Source of the DNA: Blastocystis sp. Blastoise
Taxonomy: Eukaryota > Protista > Bigyra: Opalinata
Length of the DNA: 64,000 nucleotides
Direction of reading: 5' to 3'
NCBI GenBank assembly: GCA_039096225.1
Contig: JBBPEB010000004.1
Span: forward strand, 744,001 to 808,000
Shown here: positions 2,299 to 49,985 of the stretch, one piece after another
How the letters are laid out: the number at the start of each line of letters is the position of its first letter
Position numbering within the stretch: position 1 is the first letter of the stretch
Position numbers and translations under genes: made by a program
The notes under the pieces: generated by a model
Seen by the model: the letters and a program-made list of their open reading frames with translations, nothing else
The model's database searches: none
Told to the model about the DNA's origin: nothing

Positions 2299-2852
2299 CA
2301 ATCACTTCATCATTATCGATATGTTATTTACCTGTATTATCATTACTTATTCCTTCTCTTACAAAGAATCAAACATTATATATTATGAATCTATTTGATT
2401 CTTATTTAATTAATCAATTAGTTTATAAAGAAATGAAGAACCAAATACTATTTCATTGTCTTAAAATAATTTTATTAGGACTAACTCAATCTCAATATGT
2501 ATCTGATTCCATCACACATAATGTATTACAATCTTTACTCTATCGAATGATAGACCAATCACTTCAAGTATATATAAATATATATATATATATTTGTTTC
2601 AAAGAATTATTTATTATATTTCTCTCTTTCATAGATACGTGAAGTAGCTTTTGGCGTGATATCCAGTATTCTCATATGCAAACCAGAACTCTATAAAGAA
2701 TTCACTACACAAGAAATCCTTCTATTTAAAAAGTATATATAAATAATTGTATGTATTTTATTATATATAGACAAATGTCACTGTTATTAAATGAATCGAA
2801 AAGCAAACAAATAAATACATTAGCAATTACATTTCTTTCTACTTTTCCATAA
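1..2852 (+). CDS. 3' part of a multi-exon gene, helical (HEAT/ARM-like) protein of unknown function; 5' end outside the window
   Basis: Exons separated by gtatat...tatag introns; ORFs 949-1185, 1234-2262 and 2220-2642; last exon from 2771 reads ...QMSLLLNESKSKQINTLAITFLSTFP with TAA at 2850-2852. The C-terminal 'LLYRMIDQSLQ/IREVAFGVISSIL' looks HEAT-like. Confidence 0.6.
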
Positions 2853-3089
2853 ATAAATTCATTATATATGAACGGTTTTTATTCATATTTTGTTATTTAA
2901 ATTATAAAAACAAAACATATTTTTAAAAATAATGATAATATATTAAACAATAAATTAAAATGAATGATAAGGTCTCAGTGCCAATTTCAAATCAGATTTG
3001 GCTCATACGGCACTTCCTATAATGTGTTGGCTTATGTGTCATCATAAACGATATCATTCATATATACATAAAAAATAAATATTTATATT

Positions 3090-3102
3090 CACTATCAGCG
3101 AT
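3090..3102 (+). repeat. CACTA left TIR
   Basis: CACTATCAGCGAT preceded by ATT. Confidence 0.92.
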
Positions 3103-4208
3103 TTCCATGAATAAAAATGGCCTTCTTTGTCACGTTTTGCTTTTTGGATTTAAGATTTTTTCAGAACAATTAAACAAGGAAAAAAAATACCCTCCACAGA
3201 ATAAACAACAAAAAGCATAAAAAAACCCAATGAAGATTTTTAGTATATACACGATGATTATTTTTGGTCGCTCTTTGAATAATTAATTTAAAAACTATTT
3301 AATGATTTAAATTTATCTTTGTTATTTTCATAAACTACTCTATACGCAACTATGGCTTTAACCATTATAACAAAAATTAGAAAACAAAACGAGTAAATTG
3401 TAAATAAATTCTAATTGTGAAATAACATTAAAACATTTTTTTAAATCTATCTACTGGTGGTAATTACTTCTGTCTATAAATACTCTATATAAAAAAAATA
3501 AGTTAGAATTATTCAAATCAATAAATAGTTATACATACCTAATTCACATCGTTAAAGATAGCTGTCATTTCAATGCACGTTACAATTTATATGAAGCAAC
3601 TAAAGAAAGGGATATTGATAGTTAATTAAATAATAGTAACAAAGAATTATAGAAATACGAAACAAAATACTTGCTACCCTTGAATAATCAAACACCTGAC
3701 ATTCTATATAAAAAGATGTTATGATATTTTACAACATTATATACATTAACAAGATAATTGATTCGAAAATTGATAGACACCTAGACACAATAATACTTTA
3801 ATACTGTTTAAAAGTAAAATACATTTTCAAAGAGTATAGTTATTGAATATGTTCATTGATATTTTTGTTGTGAGATAAACAAAGCAATAAAATAAAATAT
3901 GAATGTATGGTGTAAAACAAAAAATAAAGTCAGCATAAAAATATATTCTATTAAAAATACTTAGCCAATCATTTTAATATAAATCAAAAGAATTATAGTG
4001 TAGAACAGGGGTCACCACGTAGTTACTCGTTAAGCGAAAGGACCAAAATTTTTGCGCTTAAATAACAAAGTTACTTTTTTATTACCGTGATTTTCATAGT
4101 TATTTTAAGTGATGAAAACACGGGAAAAACAAAAATATAAGGGAAAATGTTTTGCTAAACCAAAAAGAACATTCTATATTAGATAAACTTTTTTTATTGT
4201 TTAAATAC

Positions 4209-6943
4209 ATGGAACAGTACTTTAAAAAATTACAAGTATATTAATAGTAATATATATATATATATATAGATTGACAAGTCTACAACAGACGAAAAAAAAA
4301 AAGATGATGACATAATTACAGAAGAAACGAATAATAAACCAGATATTAATCCTAAATCCAAATATTATAGTGAAGTAAAAGAAGGAGTTAAAAGATATAA
4401 TGCCAATCCAGTTGTTTATGGATTTAAAAAATTAACAAAAAACTCCTATTTTTGTTTAATCTGTGAGTCTACTCTCACGTGTAAAGGTTATGAAGCCTCA
4501 AAACTCTTCACTCATTTCAAGAATAAACATGGGTTAAGCAAATATACATATGATGACATTCAAGAACTCTTAAAAGATCATAATGAAAACACAGAATACT
4601 CAAATTCTCTCTTTAGCTTTTCAGATTTATCCAGTAAGCTTTCATATTTCATCGCCTACTCCATTTCAAAGAATGGATACAGCTACAGAACTGGAGAAAA
4701 ATTAGTTAAACCTATTATTGAAGAATATGAAAGGTTAAAGAATGTCAAAGTCCTTTCTAATCTTCCGTTATCCTCAAGCAGTATCAAAAGAAAAAGTGAT
4801 GAAATTGCTTTGACAATTCAACAAGAAGTAATAAATAGGATAAGACAATCAGGATCATTTTCTATTCAGCTTGACGAGTCAACTGACATAGAAATGAAAT
4901 CCTATTTACTCGTTTATGCTAGATACGAATATAATAAAAAGTTTACTGAATCATTTTTAAGTATTTTTCAGATTAGTTCCAAAACAGGTGATAATATATT
5001 TAACATGGTAGATAATTTCTTTAATAATAATAACCTTCTGTGGAATAATTGCGTATCAGCTACTTTTGACGGTGCTTCGAATATGAATGGAGACAAAAAC
5101 TCCTTCAAAACACGAGTACTAGAGAAGAATAAGAATTGTATGTTCATCCACTGTTTTCTTCATAGAGAAGAACTCTGTGTAAACTGTTTACCAAAATACT
5201 TCACTAATATATTCAAAAGTGCTGTTGAGATAATTTCATATATAAAGAAGTCTGCTGTTAGACAAGACGAATCCAATAATTACAATATTGATAATGAATA
5301 TTCATTAACCTCTTCTATCTTCTCTCCTCAAGATAACATACCTGATTCCCCTAATAATATATCTTCTTTAGAGATAGAATATAATAAAGTAGTTGAATCC
5401 CTTTTAGATACATCTGATACAGATAATAATATAGATAATAATATTCATGAAGTTTATAGTAATGATAAGAAGGAAGAAAAAAAGGAAAAAAATATTAGAA
5501 GTTATAAACTTCTCCTTTATTGCCCTACAAGATGGCTTTCATGCCATTCATCAATTAAAAGATTTAATTTACTTAGAAATGGAATAACACTAGTAATAAA
5601 AAAGGATAAAGAAAAGAAGGACTTATATAACACCATTATTGATACTAACTTCATAGCTTCAATGTTATACCTTGAGGATGTTACCAGTTTATTCTATGAT
5701 TGTAATAAATCAATGCAAGGACAGCATAGATATATATTTGGGTTAATAGACATTATGAAGGATTTATTTATAAAATTATCGTTGAGATTAGAAAGACTAA
5801 TAAATAATAACGATTATTCATCATTTACGAAACTTAAGGATTATGTATCTACAACCAAGCTTGATATTAATTCAATCATATTTTATATCAAAAATCATCT
5901 AATAACTCTTCGACGTAATTTACTGAATTATTTCCCAGAAATACTAAATTATATTGGTAGTGATGAATCGTATCTTCAAGACCTTAATGAATATTTAATA
6001 GACCAAGAAAATACACATAATACATCAAATATATCTCATGAAGTGAATAGTAATGTTAATAACAATACATCAGTAGTATCAAACCAATTTAATATTCTTG
6101 GATCATTACAAGGTTGCGTATCTCCAAATGGAGTTGTAAATGGCTTAATAACCTATGTTGACATAGTTACTCAGCAATTAATAGAAACTCAAGTAACGAT
6201 TAGAATTGACTTTCCATATTTAGTATATGGATACACTTTAGGTAGTATTTCTGGTGTTCTTAATAATTTCCCTAATAGTAGTATTCAAGGACAATACAAT
6301 GGAATCATTAGTAATATAAATATAATTCAGGCTAATATCAATTGTATAATAACTCTTGGGGCAATCATTCCAAATGAAATAAGTAATAATACAAATCAAG
6401 GAGAAGTACAAAAGAATAAAAAGCAGAAGAAAACGAATAGTAACATAAAAAAACCAAAAAATACACCAACAACTAATCTTATTGATCATTCTTTATATTG
6501 GATTACTAATCCATTTTCAAAAGTAGCTGACGAAAATAAAATGGAGTTTCATGTTAAAGAAGAGTATTTCTGTTTACTTGCTGATAAAACATGTAGAGAA
6601 GAATTTAATAACGTACCAATAGATGAGTTCTATATAAGCCATAAGAGTCGTTTTCCATTATTATATGATATAGCCAAGAAATGTTTTCTTCCCTTTGCAA
6701 CTTCATATCTCTGTGAGAGCGGTTTCAGTCATCTCGTGTATATAAAAAACAAATACAGAAACACTATTAATCCAACAACCCAAATGACAATTGGATTAAC
6801 TTCTGATATCATTGATTCTTCATCACTTATAACTACTGTTTTAGAGCGTATGTATATTATAAGTATTATATTCATAATTCACATAATATAGAATCTATTC
6901 TTAATTATATATAGATAAATTAAAGAAAAAGAAACTCGATTGA
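4209..6943 (+). CDS. hAT (Buster/Charlie, ZBED5/SCAND3-like) transposase with N-terminal BED zinc finger
   Basis: ATG 4209, 34-nt intron 4236-4269, exon 2 in frame with ORF 4810-6891. BED finger CLICESTLTCKGYEASKLFTHFKNKH; catalytic motifs LDESTD, TFDGASNM, HCFLHREEL, PTRWLS, SYLCESGFS. Probable last intron ~6848-6914 and TGA at 6941-6943. Confidence 0.93.
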
Positions 6944-9900
6944 TAACATCTAGCAACAAAATCACTAATCTAATCCAACTACTTAATTACTGTATTTATA
7001 CTACAAAGTACATTGATTTCTTTTACTATTAATATTTATATATTTATATTGTTTTCATTATATTAACTATTTGTATTCCATAATGTTTTATTGTTACATT
7101 ATAATTTGTATTGTTTTAATTAACTCAAGAAGATATACTGTTATCTTTTAAATATAATTATAAATAGATGACATTGAATATTCCTTTATATATTTGATTA
7201 TATCAATAGTATATAGTTTCTTAATTAGAATCACTATTCCTTAATAATTTTTATCTATATTTCAATTATTTTTCTAATTATATTCTTTTTCAAGTACTAT
7301 TATATTCAGATCAAACGAATAACTGAGAAATATTATTACTTATATGAAAAATAAATATTATTTTAGAAGTAATTATTTCATATATACTAATCTCTCTAGT
7401 ATAATACTTTAAAACAATATCCAATACTAATAAGAATCTTTATTCAATCAAAAGTATAATATACAACTATAAAGTATACTCTTCTTAAATCAAATAGTAT
7501 ATCTAATCAAGAAGATTAAATATATAAATAAATAGCAAAATATATTTTCAATCATAATGTATCAATAGAAAGAACCAAATAACTACTAAAATCATTTACC
7601 TGACTTATCAATCAAATATCACAAAGAGAGTGATAACAATTGGTTCCTAAAGAATATACTATTTTCCAAAACATATATATAAAGTGGAATCTTAAATCGT
7701 TTACACCAACAATTTTATATTTATACATGAATTCAAAAGGAAAGAGCAAGATGTGTTATATCTATATTAAGTATCATATGAGGGATTATATATATCCGAA
7801 AGAGTATTAGAATATATGATATAATAGAAAGTAATGTGGATTTTATATTATAATAGCATGAAATAAGTATTAGATTAAGATTCATGATATTATATAAAGG
7901 TTAGCATTTGAAAGATTATCAGAAGAAAAATTATTGGAAAGATTGACATAGACTTAATGAGAATATATTTATATATGTAGATCATAAAGAAGATAACTAA
8001 AAACTTGTAAATAAAATTTGAAGTTAAGAAGAAGGAAGAATGCATATATCAACTGAATTTATAATCGGCAGTGATAAATGAGTAGAAGAGACGATAATAA
8101 TTATTTTTAGTATATTTTTAAAGACAATAACATGAAGAGAGAACAATATTCGTATAAAAATATATATAAATCTATAAATAGAAATACAATAAATAAACCA
8201 TAAGAAGTAATAAGAAGTTGATTTCTATATTATATCATCATGAGTAAAAGAACAAACGGAGTAAATTGTATATAATAGTTAGACATTGTATAAATAATAT
8301 GAAGTAACGGCTGATAACGGAAAAAGCAGGTGTAAATATATATAAGCATATTAATTATGTACATATGCACTTAAGAAGATATAATATCTAAAGTAATAGA
8401 AATGAAAATAAATTTAGAAAATAAACAATTCGAGAACTACCTCAACCGTATTCAACAAAATAGAAGAAATACAAATAGTATTATAGTATTCATATCAGCA
8501 TGAATGTAAGATGTATATAGATAATAAGTTAAAGGGAGTTGAAATGGTTTAAAGTAAATAGAGATAGTATTTTATTAAATAACAGTACGAAAGAAATATG
8601 GAGACATAGATCCTATTATATAATTATATCATTTTTGGAAAATGAGAGTAATTAGAAATGAGAAAGAATAGAAGGAATAGAAGGTGTAGATACTAGGCTT
8701 TTATAAAAAATTAAATAAGAAGAAGAGAATGTACACAATAATAATAAATAAGAGTAGCCATATAAATATGTTTAAGTAACAAAAAGAGCAAAACCTTAGA
8801 ATGAAGAGAAATAATAAAAATATCTTTTGTGGTATATAGATAATAGTAATACAACAATGAGAACAAATCCTAACTTTGATTACTAAAATCCATGATGAGT
8901 AGTGCCAAGAGAGAAATTGTTGGAAAGAAAAAGAAAGGAAACGAACGAGAAGAATTATAAAAAACGATAGTAAGAAATAGGACTAATAAAAATATTCAAA
9001 CCCATATTATTTAGACAAGAAATGGAAAATGCTTCTGAAATAATAACTGTGTAAATAGGAAATACAATAAACATGAGCATTAAAGAATATGAAGAGAGAT
9101 AATGATGAAGCAGTATTAAAATGAATAAGTCTAATAATGAGCACACAATATACACAATAGAAGCACTAGAAATAAAAGAAAAGTGGATAAAGAAATAGAG
9201 ATAATGAGGAAGTATAGGATTAAAAATAGGCACAAAAATAAGTAGACCATGGGATAATATATAGAACATGAGAAAACGAAGAAAACCATAAATGAAGGAT
9301 ATGAATATGTATATGAAGAGTATATTTGAATGAAATATGAAAATAAATTAATTGAGTATGTTTTCAATTATAGAAACAAATATAAAAATAAATCTGTTAG
9401 AATAATAAAACTAAGATATATAATAATATATAATAGTGAGGAATTTGTAATTATTAAAGGAAAAGAAAATCGTCATTAAATCTCATAGTATGTTTAATAG
9501 AGAAATATGAAACGACTATTAGAATAACATAAGAACATAAAGAATTCTATCATAGGAGAAAAAGGAATATCAACTAAGGATAATATAAAAGTAATATAAA
9601 AATAGCACATCTAGAAACTCTTTAATAAAGGGAAAAGAACATGCAGGTGAAGTATTACGAATGATCACATAATAATTGAAAAGCACCAGAAGAAATGAAG
9701 AGTCTAATAAATATAAAGATACCATACGAAGAAGATAGGAAGAGACTGAAAAACCAGAAAACTAATACAATTAATGTAATGCTATAATACCTTAAAAGAA
9801 CAAAAGATGAAATAAGATAAGGAAATAAGATAAGGTTTATAACTAAAAATTCAATATATAATAGTAGACTAACGATAACATGAAGAGAAGTTGAAGAATA

Positions 9901-11351
9901 ATTAACCAAGATGAAAATATATACAAAGAATAAAAAGAAATTCAAAAATTTTATACAGAAAACTACAACAAAGAAATATCATATAGATACTTTCCTGTAT
10001 AATAGCATATTAAAGAATTACACAATAAGATACTAAAACATTCAAAAACTTATAATAGTAAACTTGATAGAATAAGAGTACATGATAATATTGTAATATA
10101 GACAAAAGGATTTAAGGATGAAAAGAAATAAACATCAATTGTTACTAATCTGCTACTATCTTCAGTAGAAACTTATGTATGTTAGTAACCATAGTAAGTA
10201 TTAATCGCAGAGATGAAGTGTTTAAGTATTTATTAAATACTAGAATAAGAATAAGAAAATTCATAATAAGTAAATCTATAAGAAAATGTCATCGTTATAT
10301 ATAAATACCATTATAATACAGTATGAAAAAAGGAAGTATCAGAAAAATAAAAAACAAAAACAAAATAATTAGCACTTATAAAGTAGAACAAGCAATCAAA
10401 AGCACATTAGTCGAATAAAATCAAACATACAAACAACATAAATAAAGATCTCATTAATCGCAAAGTTACAAAAAGAAAAATGAGTATACTAATTCAAGAA
10501 GAGAAGTAAGGAAGTTTGGTGAGTAACCAAATCAGATGTAAATAATAAATGGAAGGCAACAAACTGTAAATATTCATAAAATTATACATTGCAAGTAATC
10601 ATTCCAAGAATAAGTAACTGATAAGTATCCATCACGTAGCACATTGTAAGATATGTGTATTGAACACTGATCATAACGAGCAAGTACGTAACAAAGCAAT
10701 CAACAAACAATGGGAAATCATCATGTAGTAGATATTGACTAGTATTTAAGAGGAGTTCACAATGCAACAAAAACCAATATGAATCTTAATGATAAACCAT
10801 TATTAGTTCAGAAAGCAGATAGAAAGCAAGTTTGAAAAAATATTATAGGCAATAATCTTATTCTGATTTGAATCTTTAACAAAAGAATGAAATTATCATT
10901 GAAATTTTTAAAGAATGACTGAAGTTTTAAAAATAATCAAATAGTCAGTCCTTTCCTGACTTTGGTGACACTTGCCACCAAATTTTGTGACACTTTTTCA
11001 GCCATGCTTAATTCTGCTGAATTTATCAAACACATAAGGAAGTTTTTTGTAACAAAATATGATACTCATGAGTTTTGTCATCAGACTGAATGAAAGGCTT
11101 TTCACCTTATTTGTATACATGGCCATAAATCATAATATTTTTGACAAAGTTAACCTAAATACAAAAAATGTCTTTATAAATGAGCAAATAAAGCTATCAT
11201 TTATTTGATATAAGCCATCAAACATATTCAAACTAAACGAAGCAATGAAATAATTACTTTAAGCATTAATATACAAAAGACAGAAGAAAAGAAACTATTC
11301 AACTTTTTAATCACATTTAGGTACTTCTTGATACCTATATTCAACCCAGTT

Positions 11352-17970
<6,619 letters not shown>

Positions 17971-18522
17971 TATCTATATATATAATTTGTTATCAAAAAT
18001 GAAATAATATTCCTTTTAAATATAAATAAGAAAATAACGATCACTATAATAAACTAATATACAAATAAATCAATGAAATAATAATGATAAAAAGCAATTA
18101 TAATATAATTAATATAAATACTAAATAAACCTTATAGATAACGCACAATAAATACTCTTGAAAAATACTGATCATCCTGCACTATAAAATAAAGATAAAT
18201 CAAATAAATATTACAAATGAAGAAACGAATTATATACAAAAAATATTTGTTGATCCATTTGAACCATCTGGAATGCTATAGATCCTGATTTCACAGTATA
18301 AAGAGTTGTTTAAAAGCTAAAAGCCTTGATACCTAAAGAAAGAAAGTAATTAAGTAAAGCAGATTATAAAAATTAAAATAAATACTCAAGGCGAATACTC
18401 TTGATAAACTAAGTTAATTAAATTAAACCAAAATAAATGATCGTATCAAGAGATAATCAAAATAAATATATAAAAGAACAAGTTTCATAAAAAGATGTTT
18501 TTCCAAGAAATAAAAATAAAAA

Positions 18523-18595
18523 TGCCTCTTGCGAGATTCGATCCAGCGACAATTACCATAATAGCTACAGCGCTGGTCAACTATACCAACCGATT
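18523..18595 (-). pseudogene. tRNA-like element 1 (degenerate; Pol III A/B boxes)
   Basis: Minus strand: TGGTATAGTTGA (A-box-like) ... GGATCGAATCTCG (B-box/T-loop-like), followed by a TTTTT run; ~73 nt; no convincing anticodon arm. Confidence 0.55.
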
Positions 18596-18888
18596 TCTCA
18601 ATTTTATTTTTTCATGTGTTCTATATAATAAGTTTAAAATTATTTGATATCTTCAAATATTATATTTATGCTCTTTTATTACATTTATAACATTCTAGAA
18701 ATACTTAGAATTGTTTTTAAACAATAATTACTATTTTTTGAAAAAAAAGTTTGTTGATATGTTGATTCTAAACTAAAAAGCAGATATCAATGATGTAAAT
18801 AATGTTTACAGATAATAAAAATGAAACAAAGTTGATTTTAAATAAAATCATTGTAAATAGCAGTCAAAAGAAAAAGTTTAAAAAAATA

Positions 18889-18960
18889 GTTCCTCGTAAG
18901 ATTCGATCCGTCCACTATGTAAAAATTTTATACGCACTGACCATTTGACCAAACAACTCC
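18889..18960 (-). pseudogene. tRNA-like element 2 (degenerate)
   Basis: Minus strand: TGGTCAAATGG (A-box) ... GGATCGAATCTTA (B-box), followed by a T-run; same layout as copy 1. Confidence 0.55.
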
Positions 18961-20288
18961 CTTATAATATTTTTCATCAAGTCATATAATAATTGCAAAG
19001 CTAGTGACTACTAACCGTTTTTTTATTTTTTTATTTTTAAACATAAAAACAATATATTTTATAATATAAATATTATAAATGTGTTGTGTGACTTATTCTA
19101 CATATAAAATACATTTTAAAACCATTTTATAAGGCTATTAAAAATCATTTTGTTGGACGTATTGTTTTTTCAAATCCAGCTTTTGTTCATTGTATTGTTT
19201 TTTGTTTGATTTTTGAAAAATAATATTTTAATATGCTTTTCGTTTATTTAATTTTTATTACTTGTCAGGATGTATCTGTACAGTCCCTACAAGACTACTT
19301 CATGATATTTTATAAAAATAAAAACTTTTTAATTACATTATTATTTTTTATAATATTTTTTAGTATTTATTGACATTATTTTTCATTATAAACATAAATA
19401 AAAGTCTTTAAAATAATATACAAAAGAATATCTTAAGCAATTGACTTTTGTCACAAAATAATTTTTATTTGTCACCCAAATTAACACAAATAGTCAAATA
19501 TAGGAATCATACTTGTTGTTATTTGATGACTTATGAACTTTTAAGTCATGTATCTGTCACAACATGTGTCACAAAAATCTTCTTAGATGACTTATTTCAA
19601 AACATTTATACATTATATATCAAAATAATATGTTTTAAGTTAAAAACTGTCATGTCATAGTATAATAGTCAATGAATGAATTACTTTTTTATGTCACCCG
19701 GTCTTTTTTTCATGAAAAGTGTGTAAATTAATGCGTCTTGATGAGCTGAGTTTGAAAATTTTTTGACCACTAATAATCAGTATTTAGCCAATTTAAAAGA
19801 ATTCAAAGTTTTGTAAAAATTTGAAGCATGTATTGCTATTATGATTCTACTACTACTATATTATTAAGATCTACACATAATCACGCTTTTTTCCTAATTG
19901 TTAAATACTTAAAGACAATCAATCATTATAACTACATGATTAACATTCTAAAAATGCTAAAAAATTCAATTTGCTCTCTAATTATAATATGTGTAAGGTT
20001 ATTATTTATTCAACAACAAATCAAATTACATCAACAAACACAAACCTCGTGTAAAATGTCAAAAACATCATTATTGAGCTTATCTCGATCCTCTAAAAAT
20101 TATTAAACGTTTTATTCTATGTAGATTTATAAAAATTAAAAGAAAAATGAAATAAAAGATTTAAGCGCAAAAACAACATCGAAAAGCGCACTTTGCGCTT
20201 AAAGCGCAGTTTTGGCACACCCTGGTGTAGAAGATAAATAGCCAATCATTATGAAATAGAATAAAGGAATAAAGAAAAATAGAATAAT

Positions 20289-21083
20289 TCAAAGATTTAT
20301 CCTGAGAATGGTAGAATCTCTTGGCATTTCTGCAAATTGTTTATTATTGTTTCATAATGTATATATGTATAAGAACTTGTATTTGGAAAAGGACTAATTG
20401 GAATCCATTTGCCAAACTAAAAATAAAGAATATTATATAAAAGAATGATAAAAGAAACGTATAAAAGCATACAATCTCAGAGGATCCTGAGTCATGTATT
20501 TCTATTTCTCTATCTAAATGAAACCCAAAGAATTGAGGAAACGAGCCTTTTCGACGACGATTAGTAATACATTCACGAACACAAACCATTATAATTTCAT
20601 CACTATAATTATCTTGTTTCTCATATGTATGCAAATAAAGACGAGCAAGACGACAAATATATATGTAGACCTCTGACTCATGATCTAAACATATATTATT
20701 CTTTTTTAATGTAAACATGGATTTTGCATTTTTTCGTATAGCTTCAGGTAAGCAAAAAGGAATTACCTTTATTATAGTCTATTGAATTAAACATTATATA
20801 TGTATACAATAAATACTTTTAATTTATTTGAATTCAACTTCTTGTTTCTAAATGGAATATCTCTTTTAATGGAAAGTCTTCTTATCATAGCCTCACATTC
20901 TATAAAAACATCTGAGCAACGAATAGTCTTTTCTAAATAATTATTACCAAAGAATTAAATTGAAATACCATTTGTCTCTTCACCTTTTAATTCGTTAAAA
21001 TAATGTTCGATAGCTTTATAGATATCTTCTTGAAGACTATCAATTTTATTTCTTTCTAATGAAGATAAAGTAGATGATTCCAT
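20289..21083 (-). CDS. CACTA accessory protein (ORF2), 4 exons, divergent from the transposase
   Basis: ATG 21083 (MESSTLSS...), three GT-AG introns join in frame through 'IIMVCVRECITNRRRK' to TGA 20289-20291. Lies within the CACTA termini, head-to-head with the transposase. Confidence 0.6.
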
Positions 21084-21280
21084 GAAAAAGAAAGTAAAAG
21101 AAAAAATATATATGAAAACCGTGATAATAATCAGTAAAATTCTACAGAAGAAATGAATTTTATTTTTTTTAATAAACATTTTTCATAGTATTTGTTATAA
21201 TGAATAATTATAGACATAAGATATCTAATAAGAAGAAATCAGGAATAAATAGTAAGATATAAAAATAAGAAATAACATTA

Positions 21281-24200
21281 ATGATCATAGCAACATTATT
21301 ATCTGAGAGACATGACACTTATCATAGATCAACTACCTTGATTGCAGATGAAATCAACAATGTGAATATTTCTTTAAATAATGAGAATACACCAATTGAG
21401 ATAGAAAATGGTGATATTATAAGGCAGATCATGCAACTCATCTTATCACAAAAAGTATACGGTTTATATTAATATATATATAATATATACCTCTCTTTTA
21501 ATATAAGCCATTATTATATTTCTTCAACACAATACCTACTAATCATTTTATCTAGATAATTCATGAGAAAGTGAGTACAAAAGAGGATGCCATGAATGAC
21601 CTAATTTTTGAGTGTTGGAGAAAACTAGGTATTAGCTTTCAAAAAGTAGCAAATTTGTATGAATTAATAAATAATTTAATAAGCGAATTTGACATTGATC
21701 TTCCTATATTAACAATACCCAAATGCTCACAAAATATTGTAAGAAAATATGTTAGAAATTCTATATATAAGCCTCTTCATATAAATATATTTTCATGTAA
21801 TAAGTGTCATGTAATACATACATATAATACAATACAAGCATATCCATTATTTAAAGATATAACATGTAGTAATCCTATATGCAACGGAAATATATGTATA
21901 TATTTCTAGAAGTAGTTATATATATATATATATATATCACAAAACATTATATAATTCTTATATAGGTAACAAACAAGTTATTATTCCACTAATTCCCCGA
22001 CTTCAAGCCATACTTTCATCTCCATATTATATACAAGATATTGAATTTTATCGAAAAGATGAGATAGAACAAATATATAGTAGTCTTAATAATAGTAACC
22101 TAGATTCAATGATTCAAAATATACCAAATTACATGCTAGGAATGAATTATAAATCATATCTTAGAGATTGTGCCAATAATGGTGATATCATTTTATCATT
22201 CAACGTTACTACAGACGGTATATCGATGTTTGATAAGGCTGTTACTAAGCAGAATAGTTCTTCAAACCCAATTTTGATCCAATTATTAAATTATAAGAAA
22301 TTTAGAAAGTACGATAAAAGAGAGTTCTATATGTATACTTGCGTAGATGAGCCTTCTATTGACTTATGCCTTGATATACTGATGGCTGAATTCAAGTTAC
22401 TCCAAGCTGGAATAAACATGGATATTTATCTTGATGGGAGATTACAGAATAGGAAAGTAGTTGGCATATTAATTAATACATTTGGAGATTCTGCAGCATT
22501 ATCTCATGTAGGTAAATTTTTAGGTCCATCATCTACATATCCTTGTAGATTTTGCGATATGCAAAGCGATAAGCATGCTGAACTATTACATGAAGGTATG
22601 AAGTGTTCCTATTCTCATGTATCTATATCAGTTCAAAAGTCGAATACTGGAGTCCATATATATATTCCATGTTATCAGTTTCTTCTTAAATGGATTAATA
22701 AAACGAATACTTATATAAATAGTAAACCATATATCATGTACAAATCCTTTTCGAAGAGTTGTAAGTTATATGAAGATTCATTTACTAATATTAGATACAA
22801 TCCATATTCTAAAGAAGTAATTACTGAAATAAGAAGTAGTAATAATGATAATCCATCCTACAATAAAGGAATAAAAAAGGTAAGAAGTACTTCTGAACAA
22901 CTTAGCTACTTTAATCCTTCAACATCATTTCCATTAGATACTATGCATCTTTTTGGAAATGTTTGTAATACTTTATTAAGTTTATTATTTGGATTCAAGA
23001 AGGAAAATAAAAATAAAAGTAAGAAGAAGGAAGAAAGTAATAAAAGTAAGAAGAAGAAAGAAAGTAATAAAGGTAAGAAGAGGAAAAATAGTAATAAAGG
23101 TAAGAAGAAGAAAGATAGTAATAAATGTAATATGAAGGAAGATAGTAATGAAAGTAATATGAAGGAAGATAGTAATATGAAGGAAGATAGTAATGTAAGT
23201 AATATGAAGGAAGATCAATCGAATAAAAAGACATCCTCAAATGAAAAAGAAAATGATAATACTAAAGAAAACCAGAGGAAACCATTTGAACTAAACCCAA
23301 CAAATAAAAGCATTTTGGAAACACGTATCTCAGCAGTTAATAGTATATATGGGGATTGTGAATACCAGTTTCGTTATATACTAGATGAAACAATGTTCAA
23401 CAAAATAAATACACACACGAAAATATTTTTCGTTTCTAAAATATTACCATTAATATTATATGATTTTAATTCAAAAGACAGTCCTATAATACCTCTTTTC
23501 GAATTATTAGCTTCTATTATTCATGATTGCCATATATATAAAGCGAATGATATCGAAGACTTGGAAATGCTTGAAAAGAAATGTTTTACATTCACATTTC
23601 TCTGTGAGCTTATACTGCCAAAGCAATTAATTACATCTCAAATACATTCTATCCAGCACTTGGTCTCATGTTTAAGAAATACAGGAAGCTTATCAGTAAC
23701 ATCAACTTGGAAATCAGAATCATATTATTCTAAAATTAAGCACTCATCTCATTCTCGCAATGAATTTAATATTTCCTGCTGCATGTCATCAATAACCAAA
23801 GAAACAATTTTAGTATCTAATGATCATCAAGGAAGATCCAATAACAGAAACGAAATAAGTAATATATCTCAACCATGTGAAGATATGCAACATGATAAGA
23901 ATACTATTTACTATAATCCTGTTGGAAACAATAAAACATATATATATTCTGCTAGTTGTTCTCATTATTCTGAACCGATAGAGATGCCAGATAAAGTACT
24001 TTTCCAGTTTCTCAAAATAATTCTTGAAGAAGGATCTCAAACACTTATTAATTATCTAATAGATGGTATTATTGGTTGGACAGGAGAAAATAGAAATTAT
24101 AATTTAAACTTATTTATAGAAAATAATTTTCATCAGTTGAAGGATAATTATAATAAACTATCTGTTAGTTTCTATGATAGAATCCTTGTTAATAACAAAC

Positions 24201-24532
24201 TTATATATACAACCAGCCAAGTTGATGATGGTGTACATAGAATAGATAATTCATACTTGATATATTATGAAAAAGAAAATAATCATCAGCCACATCTTGT
24301 AAAGGCCTTAAAATATATAAAGGTGAATGATTCCATATTTGTAATGAATTACGATTATGGTCCAGCATTATCATCTGCAACAGGATTATATTATCACTTT
24401 ATGGACAGTCAAGGGTTTCAAGGATTCCAAAATATTAACATATTTCTTGCTTCAAACGTTTTAGTAATGGATATACATACAAATAAAACCCCTGATGACA
24501 TTCTTTGTGAAGTATATACTTATATTAATTAA
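21281..24532 (+). CDS. CACTA/CMC transposase (Transposase_21-like)
   Basis: Exons ~21281-21454, ~21557-21895, ~21966-24510. Motifs CNKC...CSNPIC, PLIPRLQAIL, NVTTDG, FGDSAA...GPSSTYPCRFC, PLDTMHL, HSIQHL...G....STWKSESYYSKIK. The 3' end may have one more small exon. Confidence 0.88.
22995..23220 (+). repeat. Coding tandem repeat (~27-bp unit), Lys-rich insert in the CACTA transposase
   Basis: KSKKKEESN / KGKKRKNSN / NMKEDSN repeats. Confidence 0.8.
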
Positions 24533-26854
24533 TAATAAATAATAATATATTCATATTAGTATCATAATAAATACATCGTATGTATATTAGTAATAGTTAT
24601 TTAGTATCATTTTTTATATTTCATTGTGTAGATAAATCTTTTAATTACTAATATAATAATTATTATAATGAATTCATTTTACTTTTATATATATTTAATT
24701 ATCAGAATGATTACCTTCATCTTTATATGCATATATATATTCTTAATACTAATTATTTATATATTATTAACTATAAAAAATTTTGTCAAATAATATCTTT
24801 TATTGTTTCTATACTTTATTCTTCTTTATATAGGAAAAACAAACCAAAGAAAAGACTATCCAAAGGTCTACGTTGACAGTAACTTCAGAAGATGTTTATA
24901 CTTATACAACATTTATACCAAAAGACTACATGCATGTGAATGGGTACATTTCCATGTAAATACTTATAAAATTATATGTATAATCGTATTTAAACTTTGA
25001 CTTTTTTATAATTTATATTTTTAATGTATAATTTCATACATATTATCTCTTATAATCACTTTTTGGTTGTTCTTGTTATTAATGAATTTCATAACATAAA
25101 AGCAGATCATAGTAGGTTTTTCTAACTTAATTCAACTTCATAATAGTTAAAATTACAGTGAATAAATGTTTTAAATAATACATAAAAAAATGTTCAAATT
25201 CATATCTATTTACAACTTTTTTCACCAATAATCTATATATATGAAGCAATAATCATCGAACTTTTCAAGTATCTAATATTATATCGAATAATATATATAT
25301 TATATTGATTTGTACTAAATTCATTCATATTTACTGAATATATCCTTATTTCATTGTATTTTTCTATCCATAATAATAAAGCATCTTATTTAAAAACTAT
25401 TACATGTTCTATTCAAAATAGAATGAGCATAGACTTATTTAATTTAATCTTCTAAATTCTCATATATTTTTTTAAATGTTTAATATATAATCCTATTTTA
25501 TTGTTATTAATTCATAAAGTAATTATTACAGTAATATATGTTTTCTATATATTTTACTAAACCATTTTCAATAACCATATTAGTAGATCTTTTGTTACTA
25601 ATAAATGAAATATTAATGGCAAACCATAATGAGTAATATATGATTTTTGTATGAACAGTCATATGATGAGAGTAAGAAAAGAGATAGAAGAAAAAATAAT
25701 TAAAAGGAGAATCTGCATAGCAATACTATATTATAATCTCATTAATCTATAGTATTATTAGTAGTAATAATAGACATTCATTGATAGTTGTGATAGAACT
25801 ATTTATGATCTAAGATCAGTAGAGGTTATAAAGAAAGTAATAGTACTTCAAGTATTATTACTTATGGTATTCTTTCTTTAAAGATATGATTACGAAAACC
25901 GAATTACATATTGATATCATAACATTTTTGGTATTTAAATTAATTTAAAAACTGTTAGTAAAGGAGGTACAATCATTTAATGACATAGCATAATATTTTA
26001 ATTGATTCAAAATGTAAGAGAAATTAGAAAACAAGAATAGAAAACATAATTATAATCTTATCATTGTTCTTATTAATAACTACTATTATACGTAGTATTA
26101 GGAGAAGAAAGAGGAAAAATATAAAAGGTATTGCATAGTAGTATATTCCAAATATATAAGTATTAACAATATTAGAAGCAATAGACAGAAAAAGGATTTG
26201 GTGTATAATAGTTTAAGTAGCAGAATATCATTAGTATTAGATATAGTATTATTGGAATAAGAATGTAAAAAGACATGACACATATAAAATATCTTTAATA
26301 TCATTACAACTAGACATAATAATAACGGTAGTAGTAGCACAAAATATTTCTATTATATTTAAGAATTCTTATAATTATTATGAGCATGCGTATTATAACG
26401 AAAACAAGAAGAAAATTGTAGGAGTTTAGTAATAGTAGTAGTGTCATCATCAGCTTATTATATAAAAATACAAGGAGACATAACAGTATGGGTATGTTCT
26501 AACAAGAGGAAGATTATTTTGAAGAAATATTTGTATTACGATGAAAATATAATCAGTTGTTAGAATAAAAAGGCTTATACTAGTAATACTATTATACTTC
26601 ATGATCTTCTGATTGTTATATAGAGAAGACTATTAATATTATTGATTCTTTATTAGTATTAGTATATGTACTATTATTTATAATCTTAGTATCTTAGTAT
26701 TTGCATCCAAATTACTGATTCTTAATATAGCATTCATTCTTCTTCATGCTTTATTATTATTCTTATTGTTAATACACTTGATATGACTTTTGTTTTTGTT
26801 ATTAATAACTGTAATATACAGCAGTAATATATGGAAGTAATAATATTTAAGGAT

Positions 26855-29470
26855 GTAGTAATAATAGTATCATAAAGAAGTAATATTATCATAAAGAAGT
26901 AATAGTATCATAAAGAAGTAATAGTATTATAAAGAAGTAATAGTATTATAAAGAAGTAATAGTATTATAAAGAAGTAATAGTATCATAAAGAAATAAAAG
27001 TATTGTAAAGAAGTAATAGTATTGTACAGAAGTAATATTATTATAAGGAAGTAGTTACATTATAAGGAAGTAATAATATTATAAGTAAGTAGTTAAATTA
27101 TAAGTAAGTAATATTATAATGAAGTAGTAATATTATTATTATAAGTAAGTAGTAACATTATAAGTTATATTATTAAAATGAAGTAATAATATTGTAATGA
27201 AGTAATATTATAAGTAAGTAGTAATAATATTATTATAAGTAAATGGTAACATTATAAGTTATATTATTATAATGAAGTCATAGTATTATAAGGAAGTCAT
27301 ATTATAATGAAGTAATAATATTATAAGGAAGTAATAATATTATAAGGAATTAATATTATTATAAGTAAGTAGTAATAATATTATTATAAGTAAGTAATAA
27401 TATTATAATGAAGTAATAGTATTATATAGATGTAATAATATTATAAGGAAGTAATAGTATTATAAGGAAGTAATAATAATATAAGTAAGTAGTAATAATA
27501 TTATTATAAGGAAGTAATAATATTATGAGGAAGTAATAGTATTGTAAAGAAGTCATAGTATTATAAGGAAGTAATAGTATTATAATGAAGTAATAATATC
27601 ATAAAGAAGTAATATTATTATAAAGAAGTAATCTTATTATAAAGAAGTAATAGTATTATAAGGAAGTAATAGTATTATAAGGAAGTAATAATATTATGAG
27701 GAAGTAATAATATTATCATAAGTACTAACATTATAAGTTATATTATTATAGGTAAGTAATAATATTATAAGTAAGTAGTAACATTATAAAGAAGTAGTAA
27801 CATTATAAAGAAGTAGTAACATTATAAAGAAGTAGTAACATTATAAAGAAGTATTAATATTATAAAGAAGTAATAATATTATAAGGAAGTAATAGTATTA
27901 TAAGGAAATAATAGTATTATGAGGAAGTAATAATATTATAAGTAAGTAGTAATAATATTATAAGTACTGACATTATAAGTTATAATATTATAAGGAAGTA
28001 ATAGTATTATGAGGAAGTAATAGTATTATGAGGAAGTAATAGTATTATAAGAAAGTAATAGTATTATAAGAAAGTAATAGTATTATGAGGAAGTAATAGT
28101 ATTATGAGGAAGTAATAGTATTATAAGGAAGTAATAGTATTATGAGGAAGTAATAATATTATAATGAAGTAATAATATTATAAGTAAGTAGTAATAATAT
28201 TATAAAGAAGTAATAATATTATAAGGAAATAATAATATTATGAGGAAGTAATAGTATTATAAAGAAGTAATAGTATTATAAGGAAGTAATAGTATTATAA
28301 GGAAGTAATAATATTATAAGGAAGTAATAATATTATAAGTAAGTAGTAATAATATTATAAGTACTAACATTATAAGTTATAATATTATAAAGAAGTAATA
28401 ATATTATAAGGAAGTAATAATATTATAAGTAAGTAATAATATTATAAGTAAGTAGTAATAATATTATAAAGAAGTAATAGTATTATGAGGAAGTAATAGT
28501 ATTATAAGGAAGTAATAGTATTATAAGTACTAACATTATAAGTTATATTATTATAAGTAAGTAATAATATTATGAGGAAGTAATAGTATTATGAGGAAGT
28601 AATAGTATTATAAGTACTAACATTATAAGTTATATTATTATAAGTAAGTAATAATATTATAAGTAAGTAATAATATTATAAGGAAGTAATAGTATTATAA
28701 GTAAGTAATAATATTATAAGGAAGTAATAATACTATAAGTACTAACATTATAAGTTATATTATTATAAGTAAGTAATATTATTATAGGAAAGTAATAATA
28801 TTATAAGTAAGTAGTAACATTATAAGGAAGTAATAATATTATAAAGAAGTAATAATAATATGAGGAAGTAATAATATTATGAGGAATTAATATTATCATA
28901 AGTAAGTAGTAATAATATAAGGAAGTAATAATATTATAAGGAATTAGTATTATCATAAGTAAGTAGTAATAATATTATTATAAGTAAGTAGTAATATTAT
29001 TATAGGAAAGTAATAATATTATAAGGAAGTAGTAGTAATAAGGAAGCAATTACAATATTATTATAAAGAAGTTGTAATAATATTATAGGTAAGTAATATT
29101 ATTATAGGTAAGTAATAATAGTATTATAGGAAAGTAATAATATTATAAGGAAGTAGTATTAATATTATTATAGGTAAGTAATAATATTACAGGTAAGTAA
29201 TAATATTACAGGTAAGTAATAATATTATAGGTAAGTAATATTATTATAGGTAAATAGTAATAATATTATAGGTAAGTAATAATATTATAGGTAAATAGTA
29301 ATAATATTATAGGTAAGTAATAATATTATAGGTAAGTAATAATATTATAAGGAAGTAATAATATTATAAGGAAGTAGTAGTAATAATTTTATAGGTAAGT
29401 AATAATATTATAAGGAAGTAGTAGTAATAATAATAGTATAAGTAATAGTATTATAAGGAAGTAATAATAC
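26855..29470. repeat. ~2.6-kb minisatellite, 19-bp unit consensus AGGAAGTAATAGTATTATA
   Basis: Directly visible tandem units with variants (AAGAAG/AGTAAG/GAGGAAG; occasional GTACTAACATTATAAGTTAT); no ORF. Confidence 0.92.
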
Positions 29471-29736
29471 TATTATTATCGCCAAAAAAAGTTAATTTCA
29501 TCATTCATATTATTCTTCTTAGTTATAACATTAATATAATTCTTATCATTATTATAAGATAATATATTATTATTATAATTAGTACCTATAAGGCACTCAT
29601 ACTTATATTCTTATTATTTTCTTTACATGATTCTTTTTATTCTTATTATAATATCATAAAATCTAGAAGTGAGAAATAAAATTATGAAAAGCAGAATCTA
29701 TAGAATGTAAATAAATATTTCTGTGTAACGCTTGTA

Positions 29737-29743
29737 ATAATAA

Positions 29744-29779
<36 letters not shown>

Positions 29780-31125
29780 TATATGTTTCAAGTGGATATT
29801 GAGTAGTTGATATATCTAATAGTAATTGAGAGCAGGCATGATCATTACAGAGATTAAGGAATATATCTAAGCAATTTTTAATAATCACTGTATTATCTTC
29901 CCAATAACGAAGGTTATTCAAAATTACATCGATTAAGTGATTTAATATATTACTCTTCTTACATCTAGACAAAAAATAAGATAAATCATCAATGCAATAT
30001 TGATAAATTATTTATATATATATTTAATTTCTATCTATTAATACATAGCCAATAAATATATATAATTGCTCTTTTCGAGAGGAATTCATATCAAGAAAGG
30101 TATCATCAGGAAGACGCTTCTTATTCTCATATATATATCTATATTTCTGAATTGTTCAAAGAAAATTTAATGATAATTCCATGTTGGAATTAATCCTACT
30201 AAATCAATTCTATATATATATATTTATACATATATATATATACTGTAAAAACGAAAGCAAAAACAAATGTAATAATATATAATAATATATATAATAATAT
30301 ATAATAACATATTATAATATAGTTTATATATATTTACGTTAAGTCAATAACTAGCATTATGTTTAAGTTGAATAACTTCTGTACCTATTAATGATAGTTA
30401 TTTTGAACCTGTGTTTGCTGAATACTTGATTAATAAAAACAGTAACAACAGTATTACAAAACCACGAAAGACAGCCTATAAATAATTGTTTAAGAATATA
30501 TATATTGCTCAATAATTGTTTTATTCGCCAATTCTTGATAATCTGTAGTATTTACTCATACTTTAGAAAATTGATAAAGAAGGGTCTAGAAATACACGAG
30601 AATAGAAGTAATAAATATAATAATGAATATAAATATAAACGTATATTTAAATGCAAATATAAACAAAAAAAGAGATTATTATAATAATACTATATACATT
30701 ATATTCTTCATTAAGAGGATCAAAGCAGTTACATATATATGTAGTATTCACTTAAAAAAATATCTGACTATTTGAGGTAATTGTTGCATTTCTATGGCTA
30801 AGCTTTCTGTATCACTAAGAGGGTTATTCATATCATCATCAACATAATCATCTACACTTTCCATTTTACCATTAATATATGCTTGTATTAATTGATGAAC
30901 AGATTCATTAAAACAACTTGTATTATCAATATCTGAACCGATCTGAACATAACGTTCAGCACAAATCAGTCAACTCCATAAAGTAAGTAAATAACTAAAA
31001 GAATTACTACACCATTGCCAATTCTTAAAGGAATCAATAGTAAAATTTGTTAAAAGACGAATAAATTCACTATATCGTGGAGTTCTGAAAAGTTCTGATA
31101 ACTGGAAATTAGCCTAAAGAAATAG

Positions 31126-31172
<47 letters not shown>

Positions 31173-31460
31173 TTATAGTATAATATATTCGTATATAGAA
31201 TTCATATAATACATTAATAATAATAATAATAAATATATCTATATACTTTAAGTTTTCATAATAATTGACAGAACATATGATAAGTATCTTTATCATCAAA
31301 TGCATGACTACGAGTTAATTGTTCAAAAACCTCTTCAATTAATAATTTTAAGAATTCTAAACGAGATTCAGGTTTAACAAAGAGATAACGTCTCATAGAA
31401 GTCATCATTAATAAACAATGTAAACAAGTGACTGTAGTAGGAGGATAGCAGGAGTAATAA
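29737..31460 (-). pseudogene. XPO7: Internal fragment of exportin-7 (XPO7/RanBP17 family), intron-containing, inside the CACTA element
   Basis: 'CLHCLLMMTSMRRYLF...YHMFCQLL', 'ANFQLSEL...FIRLLTNFTIDSFKNWQWCSNSFSYLLTLWS*', 'AYINGKMESV...NPLSD' and 'ILNNLRYW' match exportin-7. In-frame TGA at 30970-30972; truncated at both ends. Confidence 0.85.
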
Positions 31461-32923
31461 CTAGATAAAGAAGATAATGATGACAATAATAATAAGTATA
31501 ATAATAAGTATAATAATGATAGACATCTATTATATAATATATATATATAATAATTACTATACAATGATTTTTAGTAAAGTTAAATAAATGAATAAATACA
31601 GAAAAGTATGTAATTCTAAATCAGAACAAAACATGAATTTAATTTTTGCACAAAAACATATTCTGTTCTTGTTTAATATGATTAGACAAGCCGTAGACAA
31701 TAGTAACAATCATAAAACTTAACCGATGTAGTTAATTCACAAAAGAATTGTGGCAGCATAACTTCTTAAATACTCTAATAAATATCCAAAACCATTATTG
31801 AAAGGCATAACTTCATTAACAACTGTAAACATCGAAAGGAAAAACTAAAAAGACAACAGATTAACAACAACATATAAAAAAATCTATAAGATTATAAAGT
31901 AATACGTGTAGCAATTATATCTATAATAATCAAACACATTTATCAATTTAAAATAAATTATGACATTTTGTTAACAATAATTATAATAAAAATTCTTCGT
32001 TTAAAAAAAACGAAGAAAACTCGCTGTTTTTTACAAAAAAATTTTTCTTCGTTTTTTAATCATTCATTGACCTAATTCAAATGTTACAAGCTGTTCGTCA
32101 TATAGAATAAAAATTAGTTGTGTCTTCTTACTTTTAAATAAAAACTAACAAATTATATTGATTTACTCAAAATCGATATGAAATAATTTGGGCAACTATA
32201 ATGTTTATAGCATATAATTTAGGGTGATTATGCTATGATACAATTGTGAAATCAACACACAAACAAATATTTGAATCTGATGCAAAATATTCTATTGACG
32301 CATCATTAAGGGTGTCTTGTGGCTCATATACTCATATCTGATATGAAATGAGTCTTAAAACAATTTTCAATTATATTTAGACATGTTTTAATTCAAAAAT
32401 AGAAATAGACCAAGTTTTGAATGGGAAAAACATTCCCGTAAGTATTTCAAAAATTTAAGACTCTGGTCTGACTGTCCATCAAACAAATAGGCTCGGTTAT
32501 TTTTTTTCACTGAAAAAAAAATAACAAAATTTGAATTTTTGGCTGAAATTTGGTTTTGAGCCATAGCGGCCATTTTATTAATTTTTATTCGTATATATGA
32601 CTCTTAAAAATCTTTTACTCCAAACACAACTATAAAAAACTTTATAATATGGACCCGATGAATTAACCAAATTTCGACTTAAAACAAACTAAAAACGTTT
32701 TTGATATTATGTGACATTCTAAGACGAGAAAATAATGTCAATTTTTTAATAAAATATGTCTAATATGGTTTTTTATACCTAAGAAAAACTAAACTGAAAA
32801 AAAGTGTCAAAATTTTGTCAAAATTCACGATTTTTGCCTAAGTCGCTGAAGTAAATCTCATTCCATTGGTGGAACAAGTTTTGAACCAAAATCAACCAAT
32901 CAGATACATTTAATAATTAAAAT

Positions 32924-32936
32924 ATCGCTGATAGTG
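32924..32936 (-). repeat. CACTA right TIR
   Basis: ATCGCTGATAGTG followed by ATT. Confidence 0.92.
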
Positions 32937-33512
32937 ATTTCACTTACTTAAAATATGGCGAACACAATTCAATCAACAACTATAAAGAAATAGAACTTAA
33001 CGAAATCCAATGTATTTAACATGTAAAGAATCGGTCAGATGTTAAGCGTTTTGCCTTCTAGCTAAGTTTTTGTTCAATACACACAAATTAAAATTAATGT
33101 ATCGATGGTTTATCCTAGCAAAAACAATAATAAAATGCGCCACATCGTCATACCCATTATACATGATGAATATATAATCTAATACTTACGTTCACATCAA
33201 TATATTTCTCTTCGGCAGCAGAAAGCATGGATATCACAAGGCTTATATTGCAACTATAAAAATAGGAAAAATAATTTAGGAAGACTTTTATATGCATAAA
33301 AAACATAAACAAAAATATAGTATTGCTTATGATTAGGAAAACCACTTTTTGGGCCTGTTTTTGACATCAAATGACGACATAACGCCCTTCAATGCTTCGA
33401 CACGGCCATATAAATAATATAATTATATATACCTATTGTTAGGCTTGCTGTTGCAATAGATACCATAGCTAAAACAAACCATTATGGACTGAAACCATCT
33501 ATAGAAAAAATA

Positions 33513-49766: not shown

Positions 49767-49985
49767 AAGACTGTACTCATACAGGATCATTTCTATAGTG
49801 TACTCTCTTTTCTATTTTCTTACAAAATAGACATACATTCTAACTTTGATGATTCGTAATAGTTTCTGAGCTTAAATTGGGAGGCTAGTATATCTTTTGC
49901 TTCGGCATTCCGATATACATCGAAGAACGTCGGTAGACAATTCCATTCCAGTCTACTTGAAGCACAGAAACATTATGAAAAGTTA
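49767..49985 (+). ncRNA. U3: U3 snoRNA
   Basis: 5' AAGACTGTACTCATACAGGATCATTTCTATAGTG carries the GAC box, box A' and box A; C' TGATGA; B-like GAGCTTAA; stems TAATAGTTTCTG/CAGAAACATTA, GTAGAC/GTCTAC and terminal TAACTTT/AAAGTTA. Confidence 0.87.

Follow-up and report, generated by a model that had tools for sequence, protein, structure and literature searches.

A hAT transposon nested within a CACTA-type transposon, each with a decayed piece of a host gene, in the tortoise protist Blastocystis sp. Blastoise

Introduction

Gene capture by transposons is best known from non-autonomous elements of the Pack type. In plants, Pack-CACTA, Pack-MULE and the other Pack-TYPE elements are non-autonomous by definition (PMC8903248; Catoni et al., 2019, via PMC13317346). 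Gene fragments have also been found in elements that encode a transposase: the grapevine elements Cactavine-5, Hatvine-6 and Pifvine-3 (CACTA, hAT and PIF, respectively) contain transduplicated fragments, which consist of exons plus introns, are in some cases common to several copies, and sometimes lie antisense downstream of the transposase, as a piece in a CACTA element does (Benjak et al., 2008; PMC2528002). Here we describe a hAT transposon lying inside a CACTA-type transposon in a 64,000-nucleotide stretch of DNA (the window; JBBPEB010000004.1, positions 744,001 to 808,000, on contig C13 of the assembly) from Blastocystis sp. Blastoise. Each element carries a piece of a host gene, UTP20 in the hAT element and exportin-7 (XPO7) in the CACTA element. 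Very probably they represent two unrelated, very recently mobile cut-and-paste families, one hAT copy having landed by chance inside one CACTA copy.

The organism, strain Rus-B, is from the gut of a Russian tortoise, and its genome (33.3 Mb, 23.1% GC) is represented by a Flye assembly of R9 Nanopore data that was polished with Illumina reads (PMC10690189). The assembly comprises 34 contigs, and G+C along the window ranges from 20 to 29%. The main text of the genome paper reports transposon content only in bulk (5.6–7.5%), and names neither hAT nor CACTA elements (PMC10690189).

Insertion of the hAT element into one CACTA copy

A sequence-only reading of the window had recognised a hAT element inside a CACTA element, both with matching termini and target-site duplications (TSDs: ATT for the outer element and GTGTAGAA for the inner one), and these superfamily assignments hold (for coordinates see Table 1). 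It had also called for other copies sharing these ends with different TSDs, and for CACTA copies of about 13.6 kb free of the hAT. Both kinds exist: eight further CACTA copies and about 18 further hAT copies were found genome-wide, and all eight of the former have an exact empty site, within this same genome. The test sequence for the empty site was a 33-mer that joins the 16 bases ending at 4005 to the 17 bases from 20233, with one GTGTAGAA; it has eight exact matches, one in each of the other CACTA copies and none elsewhere. Therefore, one CACTA copy was the target of a hAT insertion, in which 8 bp of it were duplicated. Across the 33 Mb of the genome the CACTA left arm occurs nine times and the hAT 5′ end 19 times, and the two are adjacent only here, so the 30-kb nest arose in one event and has not propagated as a unit.

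This bears directly on a larger suggestion of the sequence-only reading, that the two elements could form a stacked 30-kb unit serving as a system for gene shuffling and genome expansion. It might be argued that the nest functions as a composite, mobile or active as a whole: the ends are intact and the transposase frames open in the outer and the inner element alike, and excision at the CACTA ends with the hAT still in place is possible in principle. Against this, the junction occurs once and the empty site persists in eight of eight other CACTA copies, the hAT element splits the CACTA accessory gene from its 3′ exons (see below), and the two families (nine copies of 13.6 kb and about 19 of 16.2 kb, or about 0.43 Mb) together account for about 1.3% of the 33.3-Mb genome, which is little by way of expansion. 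We consider a composite of this kind highly improbable, and return to the two families as separate entities.

The outer CACTA element

The outer element spans 3090–32936, and its un-nested sister copies are 13.6 kb long. Its terminal inverted repeat, CACTATCAGCGAT (13 bp), at 3090–3102 is matched by a perfect reverse complement at 32924–32936, with ATT outside each end. The first 900 and the last 637 bases each have nine genomic occurrences at about 100% identity, eight pairs of which are spaced about 13.6 kb apart. These eight further copies lie in unrelated flanks, and their TSDs read ATG, TTG, GAT, ATT, ATT, AAC, GTT and TGT, so that all nine copies have a matching 3-bp TSD, as expected of CACTA/EnSpm elements, and seven distinct trinucleotides are represented. 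The termini are also those of the group, with AACTA in place of CACTA at the 5′ end of two of the eight other copies. The copies were compared over 11.4 of the 13.6 kb (the ends, plus interior stretches of 4.3, 2.3 and 3.3 kb, the first of these containing the genes), and all nine were identical across each stretch tested. Two of them are in inverted orientation about 18 kb apart (C34:499063–512683, plus strand, TSD TTG; C34:530479–544096, minus strand, TSD ATG), an arrangement that readily lends itself to inversion of the intervening stretch.

The sequence-only reading had credited both elements with uninterrupted transposase frames. This is true of the hAT frame, which is open from 4270 to 6891, but only partly so of the CACTA frame, which is open from 21938 to 24532 and needs an upstream exon. 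Comparison with relatives (tblastn) showed the frame to be open from 21938 and placed the further exon at about 21577–21897; the CACTA transposase is therefore encoded by a two-exon gene of about 970 codons, not by a single uninterrupted frame. A phmmer search of 1.84 billion representative proteins with its 807-residue open reading frame (ORF) found only 27 relatives; the best relative (46% identity) is another protein of the same genome. Three relatives (P0022, P0026 and P0027; E 8e-8 to 8e-4) align to residues 14–155 of the ORF, and their matched segments are Pfam Transposase_21 (tnp2) domains, at 53–67 bits. When P0017 is included, Transposase_21 scores run from 28.8 to 67 bits, above the cut-off of 28.6, and P0019 falls just below it (27.7); several relatives also give weak matches to DUF4218. 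The tnp2-type relatives, together with the CACTA ends and the 3-bp TSDs, place the outer element in the CACTA/EnSpm group. Neither this transposase nor that of the hAT element found a match in the PDB when searched with phmmer.

Divergently oriented to the transposase gene is a second gene, the main exon of which belongs to no Pfam family and gave only sub-threshold leads in a protein atlas search. This exon is present in nine identical copies and at least 36 diverged paralogues genome-wide (21–42% identity), one of them beside a related transposase; it is an accessory gene of the CACTA clade itself, and not cargo. At the other side of the hAT insertion, in the CACTA left arm, are spliced exons, each of which, translated alone (exons were translated and searched individually, unjoined), has stops in every frame. 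In un-nested copies these exons lie directly downstream of the accessory gene, and they are therefore read as its spliced 3′ part; most likely they are the 3′ part of the accessory-gene transcript, severed from the coding part by the hAT element in the nested copy.

The RNA evidence for these and other features came from Logan contigs compared with window positions 2600–8500 (5,901 letters), with depths that are rough, and involved two runs: X1, which carries the same organism label, and X2, an unrelated polyA gut metatranscriptome. A spliced plus-strand transcript at 2635–2771 (with a 38-nt GT..AG intron, 2733–2770) lies some 300 bp before the point of CACTA insertion, and the element may have inserted in, or just behind, the 3′ end of a host gene.

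Between the transposase gene and the host-gene piece, the stretch 24533–26830 has no host source at the nucleotide level, and is followed by a 19-bp minisatellite (26828–29473; 2.6 kb, 80% matches, GC skew +0.5 to +0.6). This is organised in higher-order units of about 470 bp that are 77–80% alike, and weaker relatives form arrays at C3:652–655 kb and elsewhere.

The inner hAT element

The hAT element is bounded on the left by GTGTAGAA/CAGGGGTCACCA at 3998–4017 and on the right by TGGCACACCCTG/GTGTAGAA at 20213–20232. Its terminal inverted repeats are short and imperfect, as in other hATs (CAGGGGTCACCA versus CAGGGTGTGCCA; eight of 12 bases match, CAGGG plus CCA), and are kept in all copies. 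The two ends have about 19 genomic occurrences, 16.2 kb apart. The window copy was compared with copies fetched from among these 19, one of them truncated and nine others full-length. In eight of the nine full-length copies there is a perfect 8-bp TSD, each of a different sequence, with no central TA preference. The ninth (C16:443718–459931) has GTGGATTG on one side and CTCAGTTC on the other, a pattern that points to two copies having recombined or to the loss of flanking sequence.

An alignment of ten copies over the 16.2 kb contains 16 columns with substitutions; any two copies differ by 0–9 substitutions, and the window copy is exactly the same as two others. The transposase frame is intact in eight of the ten; in the other two it is disrupted by indels, which may be basecalling errors, one of these falling within an A-rich run at about 4291. 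The protein has the hAT dimerisation domain (Pfam Dimer_Tnp_hAT, PF05699; 22.3 bits against a cut-off of 21.4, E 1.2e-4), and its relatives, which have DUF4371 (PF14291) as well as PF05699 and are named as ZBED5/7/8/9-like, put it in the Buster clade. In X1 a 3.1-kb RNA contig covers 4006–7088 at a depth of 226, compared with 0–10 further inside the element (7131–8500), which fits RNA of the transposase region and not DNA of a 19-copy repeat. Beyond the transposase gene, the stretch 6900–11383 has no host source at the nucleotide level.

Two hAT copies have themselves received a Helitron-like insertion of 6.49 kb at the same position, equivalent to 8409/8410 of the window (C22:60405–66892 and C16:1151776–1158266). 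The insertion, flanked by A and T, starts with TC and terminates in CTAG preceded by a GC-rich hairpin; it has no long ORF. The C16 copy is full-length at 22.7 kb, and the composite of hAT and Helitron may have transposed as such, or its two copies may have arisen via duplication. The C22 copy is truncated at the equivalent of window position 8540, after which comes an array of (CCCTGG/CCTGG)n of about 0.9 kb (C22:67025–67900). This array has 83% G+C in a genome of 23% G+C, and a second locus is found at C32:749561–750013. The idea that (CCCTGG)n might be a telomere repeat was rejected, as there are just two loci and both are internal.

The captured pieces of UTP20 and XPO7

The proposal that each element contains a genomic, intron-bearing piece of a different host gene is borne out by Pfam matches and by recognisable parent loci on C34 and C4. 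In the hAT element, two minus-strand ORFs at 12080–13407 match Pfam UTP20_N. The genome has one full UTP20 gene (C34, about 670–681 kb), in which UTP20_N lies within a single exon of 646 codons, and from the alignments between the window and C34 it follows that the hAT element has an internal 5′ piece of UTP20, introns included. The large exon is 97.5% identical to that of the host, but two indels of 1 bp and one of 27 bp disrupt its reading frame. The two parts of the piece are separated by 2.7 kb (14341–17035) that gave no Pfam match and no tblastx match to the host UTP20 locus. Further to the right there is a 1.24-kb repeat, with tRNA-like stretches on the minus strand at about 18525–18600 and 18890–18950; neither ARAGORN nor Rfam called a tRNA in the element. 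In total, passenger DNA makes up about 13 kb of the hAT.

In the CACTA element, minus-strand exons at 29685–30011 and 30751–30969 match Pfam TPR_XPO7. Of the two exportin-7-like genes in the genome, that on C4 was the source, and the fragment represents about 1.8 kb of this multi-exon gene of about 5 kb. Compared with the source, the exons have 64–94% identity, four stops and many frameshifting indels. Relatives of the CACTA element that are 6.5–7 kb long and share its ends at 79–87% identity have no match to the XPO7 piece, which was therefore acquired within the present CACTA lineage.

Both pieces are thus internal, intron-retaining and degenerate. They are identical in all copies of their own family, yet diverged by 3–36% from their sources, and the captures therefore long predate the present burst: what spread is a master copy already holding host-gene debris. 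The notion of live gene shuffling finds no support in this, given an XPO7 piece with stops and frameshifts, a frameshifted UTP20 piece, and uniformity of both among copies.

It could still be supposed that the pieces are retained for a function, as sources of antisense or double-stranded RNA directed at essential host genes, or of truncated proteins. Each lies antisense to the transposase gene of its own element and is present in every copy (UTP20 19 times, XPO7 nine times), and the differences between the UTP20 exons and the host gene are mostly synonymous (ratio of nonsynonymous to synonymous substitution rates, dN/dS, 0.02–0.35, from small counts). However, spread from one master copy would by itself place the pieces in every copy, and dN/dS measured against a host gene under constraint should be low even where the copy is neutral, if its age is modest; the indels of the UTP20 large exon (two of 1 bp and one of 27 bp) and, in XPO7, the four stops, many frameshifts and one exon at only 64% identity also speak against it. 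Retention for function therefore seems to us unlikely. A more specific form of the idea would make the elements regulators: antisense fragments of UTP20 (about 19 copies) and exportin-7 (nine copies) would be transcribed and feed RNA cross-talk between transposon and host, which could damp host genes or shield the elements from silencing. We think this very unlikely.

Interpretation

We therefore prefer to regard the nest as a chance meeting of two families. The outer element, on this interpretation, is a CACTA/EnSpm-type transposon of 13.6 kb with two divergently oriented genes of its own, for a probably tnp2-type transposase and for a small accessory protein that this CACTA clade has conserved, plus a minisatellite of 2.6 kb and an internal fragment of an exportin-7 paralogue that is old and decayed; the inner one is a Buster-like hAT of 16.2 kb with an intact transposase gene, its passengers being the frameshifted 5′ piece of UTP20, the 2.7-kb stretch and the 1.24-kb repeat. 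The hAT element inserted at GTGTAGAA, between the coding part of the accessory gene and what are most likely its spliced 3′ exons, with duplication of the 8 bp. Each family would be mobilised by its own transposase, and the host fragments would be neutral passengers, each acquired once through transduplication before the burst. The nested CACTA copy would presumably now rely on its eight intact sisters for the accessory function.

Several points weigh against this account or parts of it. Subterminal repeat arrays of the plant type are not apparent: within the first 410 and the last 437 bases of the CACTA element there is no repeated motif beyond chance-level AT-rich matches. The CACTA transposase gave no direct Pfam match, either whole or in halves (E up to 1), which leaves its kinship one step removed. 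Both families are probably autonomous, as judged from sequence. Polishing with short reads (methods in PMC10690189) may have evened out the repeats a little, and the near-zero divergence among copies may thus be a slight underestimate. As to the origin of the hAT passengers, four or five older loci (C15:700k, C28:237k, C28:325k, C16:189k and C33:82k; 88–95% identity, collinear) carry the cargo module at about 12480–19765, and hAT ends were not detected at them; the hAT element may have inherited or exchanged this module instead of capturing UTP20 itself.

The remaining points concern the assembly, and raise the question of whether the nest is an artefact in which repeats were misjoined through identical copies. 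The identical copies of each family are indeed numerous, and their length exceeds that which typical R9 Nanopore reads must have to anchor them; the right-hand junctions (20224 and 32936) rest on the published Nanopore/Flye assembly and on perfect TSDs. At the left-hand hAT junction, 4005/4006, an X1 contig of 58 nt has 30 letters on one side and 28 on the other, just under the bridging rule, and it may stem from the same culture as the assembly. Nevertheless, this short-read contig does span the junction, and a misjoin would not explain why an octamer present once in each of the eight other CACTA copies is perfectly duplicated here, nor why ATT matches at both outer flanks. The likelihood of an artefact is, in our view, almost negligible, and a real insertion of one element into the other is what we take forward.

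Table 1. Features of the nested elements (positions in the window)
Feature	Position	Strand	Remarks
Left CACTA 3-bp TSD (ATT)	3087–3089		Partner at 32937–32939
CACTA 5′ terminal inverted repeat, CACTATCAGCGAT	3090–3102	+	Same in other copies, except first C to A in two
Spliced non-coding exons, CACTA left arm	3398–3850	−	GT..AG introns of 54, 59 and 41 nt; RNA contigs in X1 and X2
Left hAT 8-bp TSD, GTGTAGAA	3998–4005		Partner at 20225–20232; single octamer in eight of eight un-nested CACTA copies
Buster-like hAT transposon, 16.2 kb	4006–20224	+	One of about 19 near-identical copies
Main hAT transposase frame, 873 codons	4270–6891	+	Annotated 876-residue product adds small terminal exons; 99.9% identity
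UTP20 fragment, part A	11383–14240	−	Exons and introns; 92–96% identity to host C34:676519–679432; frameshifted
2.7-kb stretch between UTP20 parts	14341–17035		Absent from host gene
UTP20 fragment, part B	17036–17884	−	88% identity to host C34:679570–680433
1.24-kb repeat inside hAT	18512–19765		tRNA-like stretches; at least 12 other loci, 82–89% identity
CACTA accessory (second) gene, main exon	20347–20778	−	Divergent from transposase gene; no Pfam family
CACTA transposase gene	21577–24532	+	Upstream exon about 21577–21897, short intron, main exon 21938–24532; 807-residue ATG ORF 22109–24532
19-bp minisatellite, about 138 units	26828–29473	+	Strong G-over-C skew
Exportin-7 (XPO7) fragment	29685–31570	−	Four internal exons plus introns; about 80% identity to host C4:1305008–1306793; stops, frameshifts
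CACTA 3′ subterminal region and terminal repeat (32924–32936)	32396–32936	+	74–80% identity with more than 80 loci, some of them the 6.5–7-kb relatives

Outside the nested elements, a U3 small nucleolar RNA gene is present at 49767–49984 (Rfam ACEA_U3, 86 bits).

Significance

It is evident that Blastocystis of the tortoise clade holds large DNA transposons, so recently mobile that their copies differ by few bases. Their insertions are usable as strain markers. Genetic tools for this protist are few, and an intact hAT or CACTA transposase, its ends being known, is a candidate for use in insertional mutagenesis. There is also a lesson for annotation: 19 UTP20-like and nine XPO7-like pseudo-fragments, as well as the transposase genes, should not be counted as host genes.

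Comparison with known systems

The outer element resembles maize En/Spm and the tnp2 family in its CACTA termini, its 3-bp TSD, its large, probably tnp2-related transposase and its possession of a second element-encoded protein. It differs in that its two genes are divergently transcribed, whereas those of En/Spm are spliced alternatively from one unit, in that subterminal arrays were not found, and in the high divergence of its transposase (27 relatives among 1.8 billion proteins). The inner element shares with Buster hATs and the domesticated ZBED5/7/8/9 proteins an 8-bp TSD, short imperfect terminal inverted repeats starting with CAG, and the combination of DUF4371 with a dimerisation domain; unlike them, it is 16 kb long, its transposase has long low-complexity inserts, and its TSDs have no central TA preference.

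As in Pack-TYPE elements, DNA-transposon terminal repeats enclose captured host fragments that have recognisable parent loci and have been amplified along with the element. Both Blastocystis elements, in contrast, encode long open transposase frames, and so fall outside a class that is non-autonomous by definition. The sequence-only reading had seen novelty in such autonomous ‘Pack’ elements, but transposase-encoding CACTA, hAT and PIF elements with gene pieces were already known from grapevine (PMC2528002), and what we have described are new, very young families of known superfamilies; they establish neither a further class of mobile elements nor a gene-capture mechanism not seen before. Like the grapevine elements, both retain a transposase gene alongside host pieces made of exons plus introns. 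Unlike them, they are found in a stramenopile gut protist, they are larger (13.6 and 16.2 kb), and their copies are essentially identical, which implies a burst that is ongoing or very recent.

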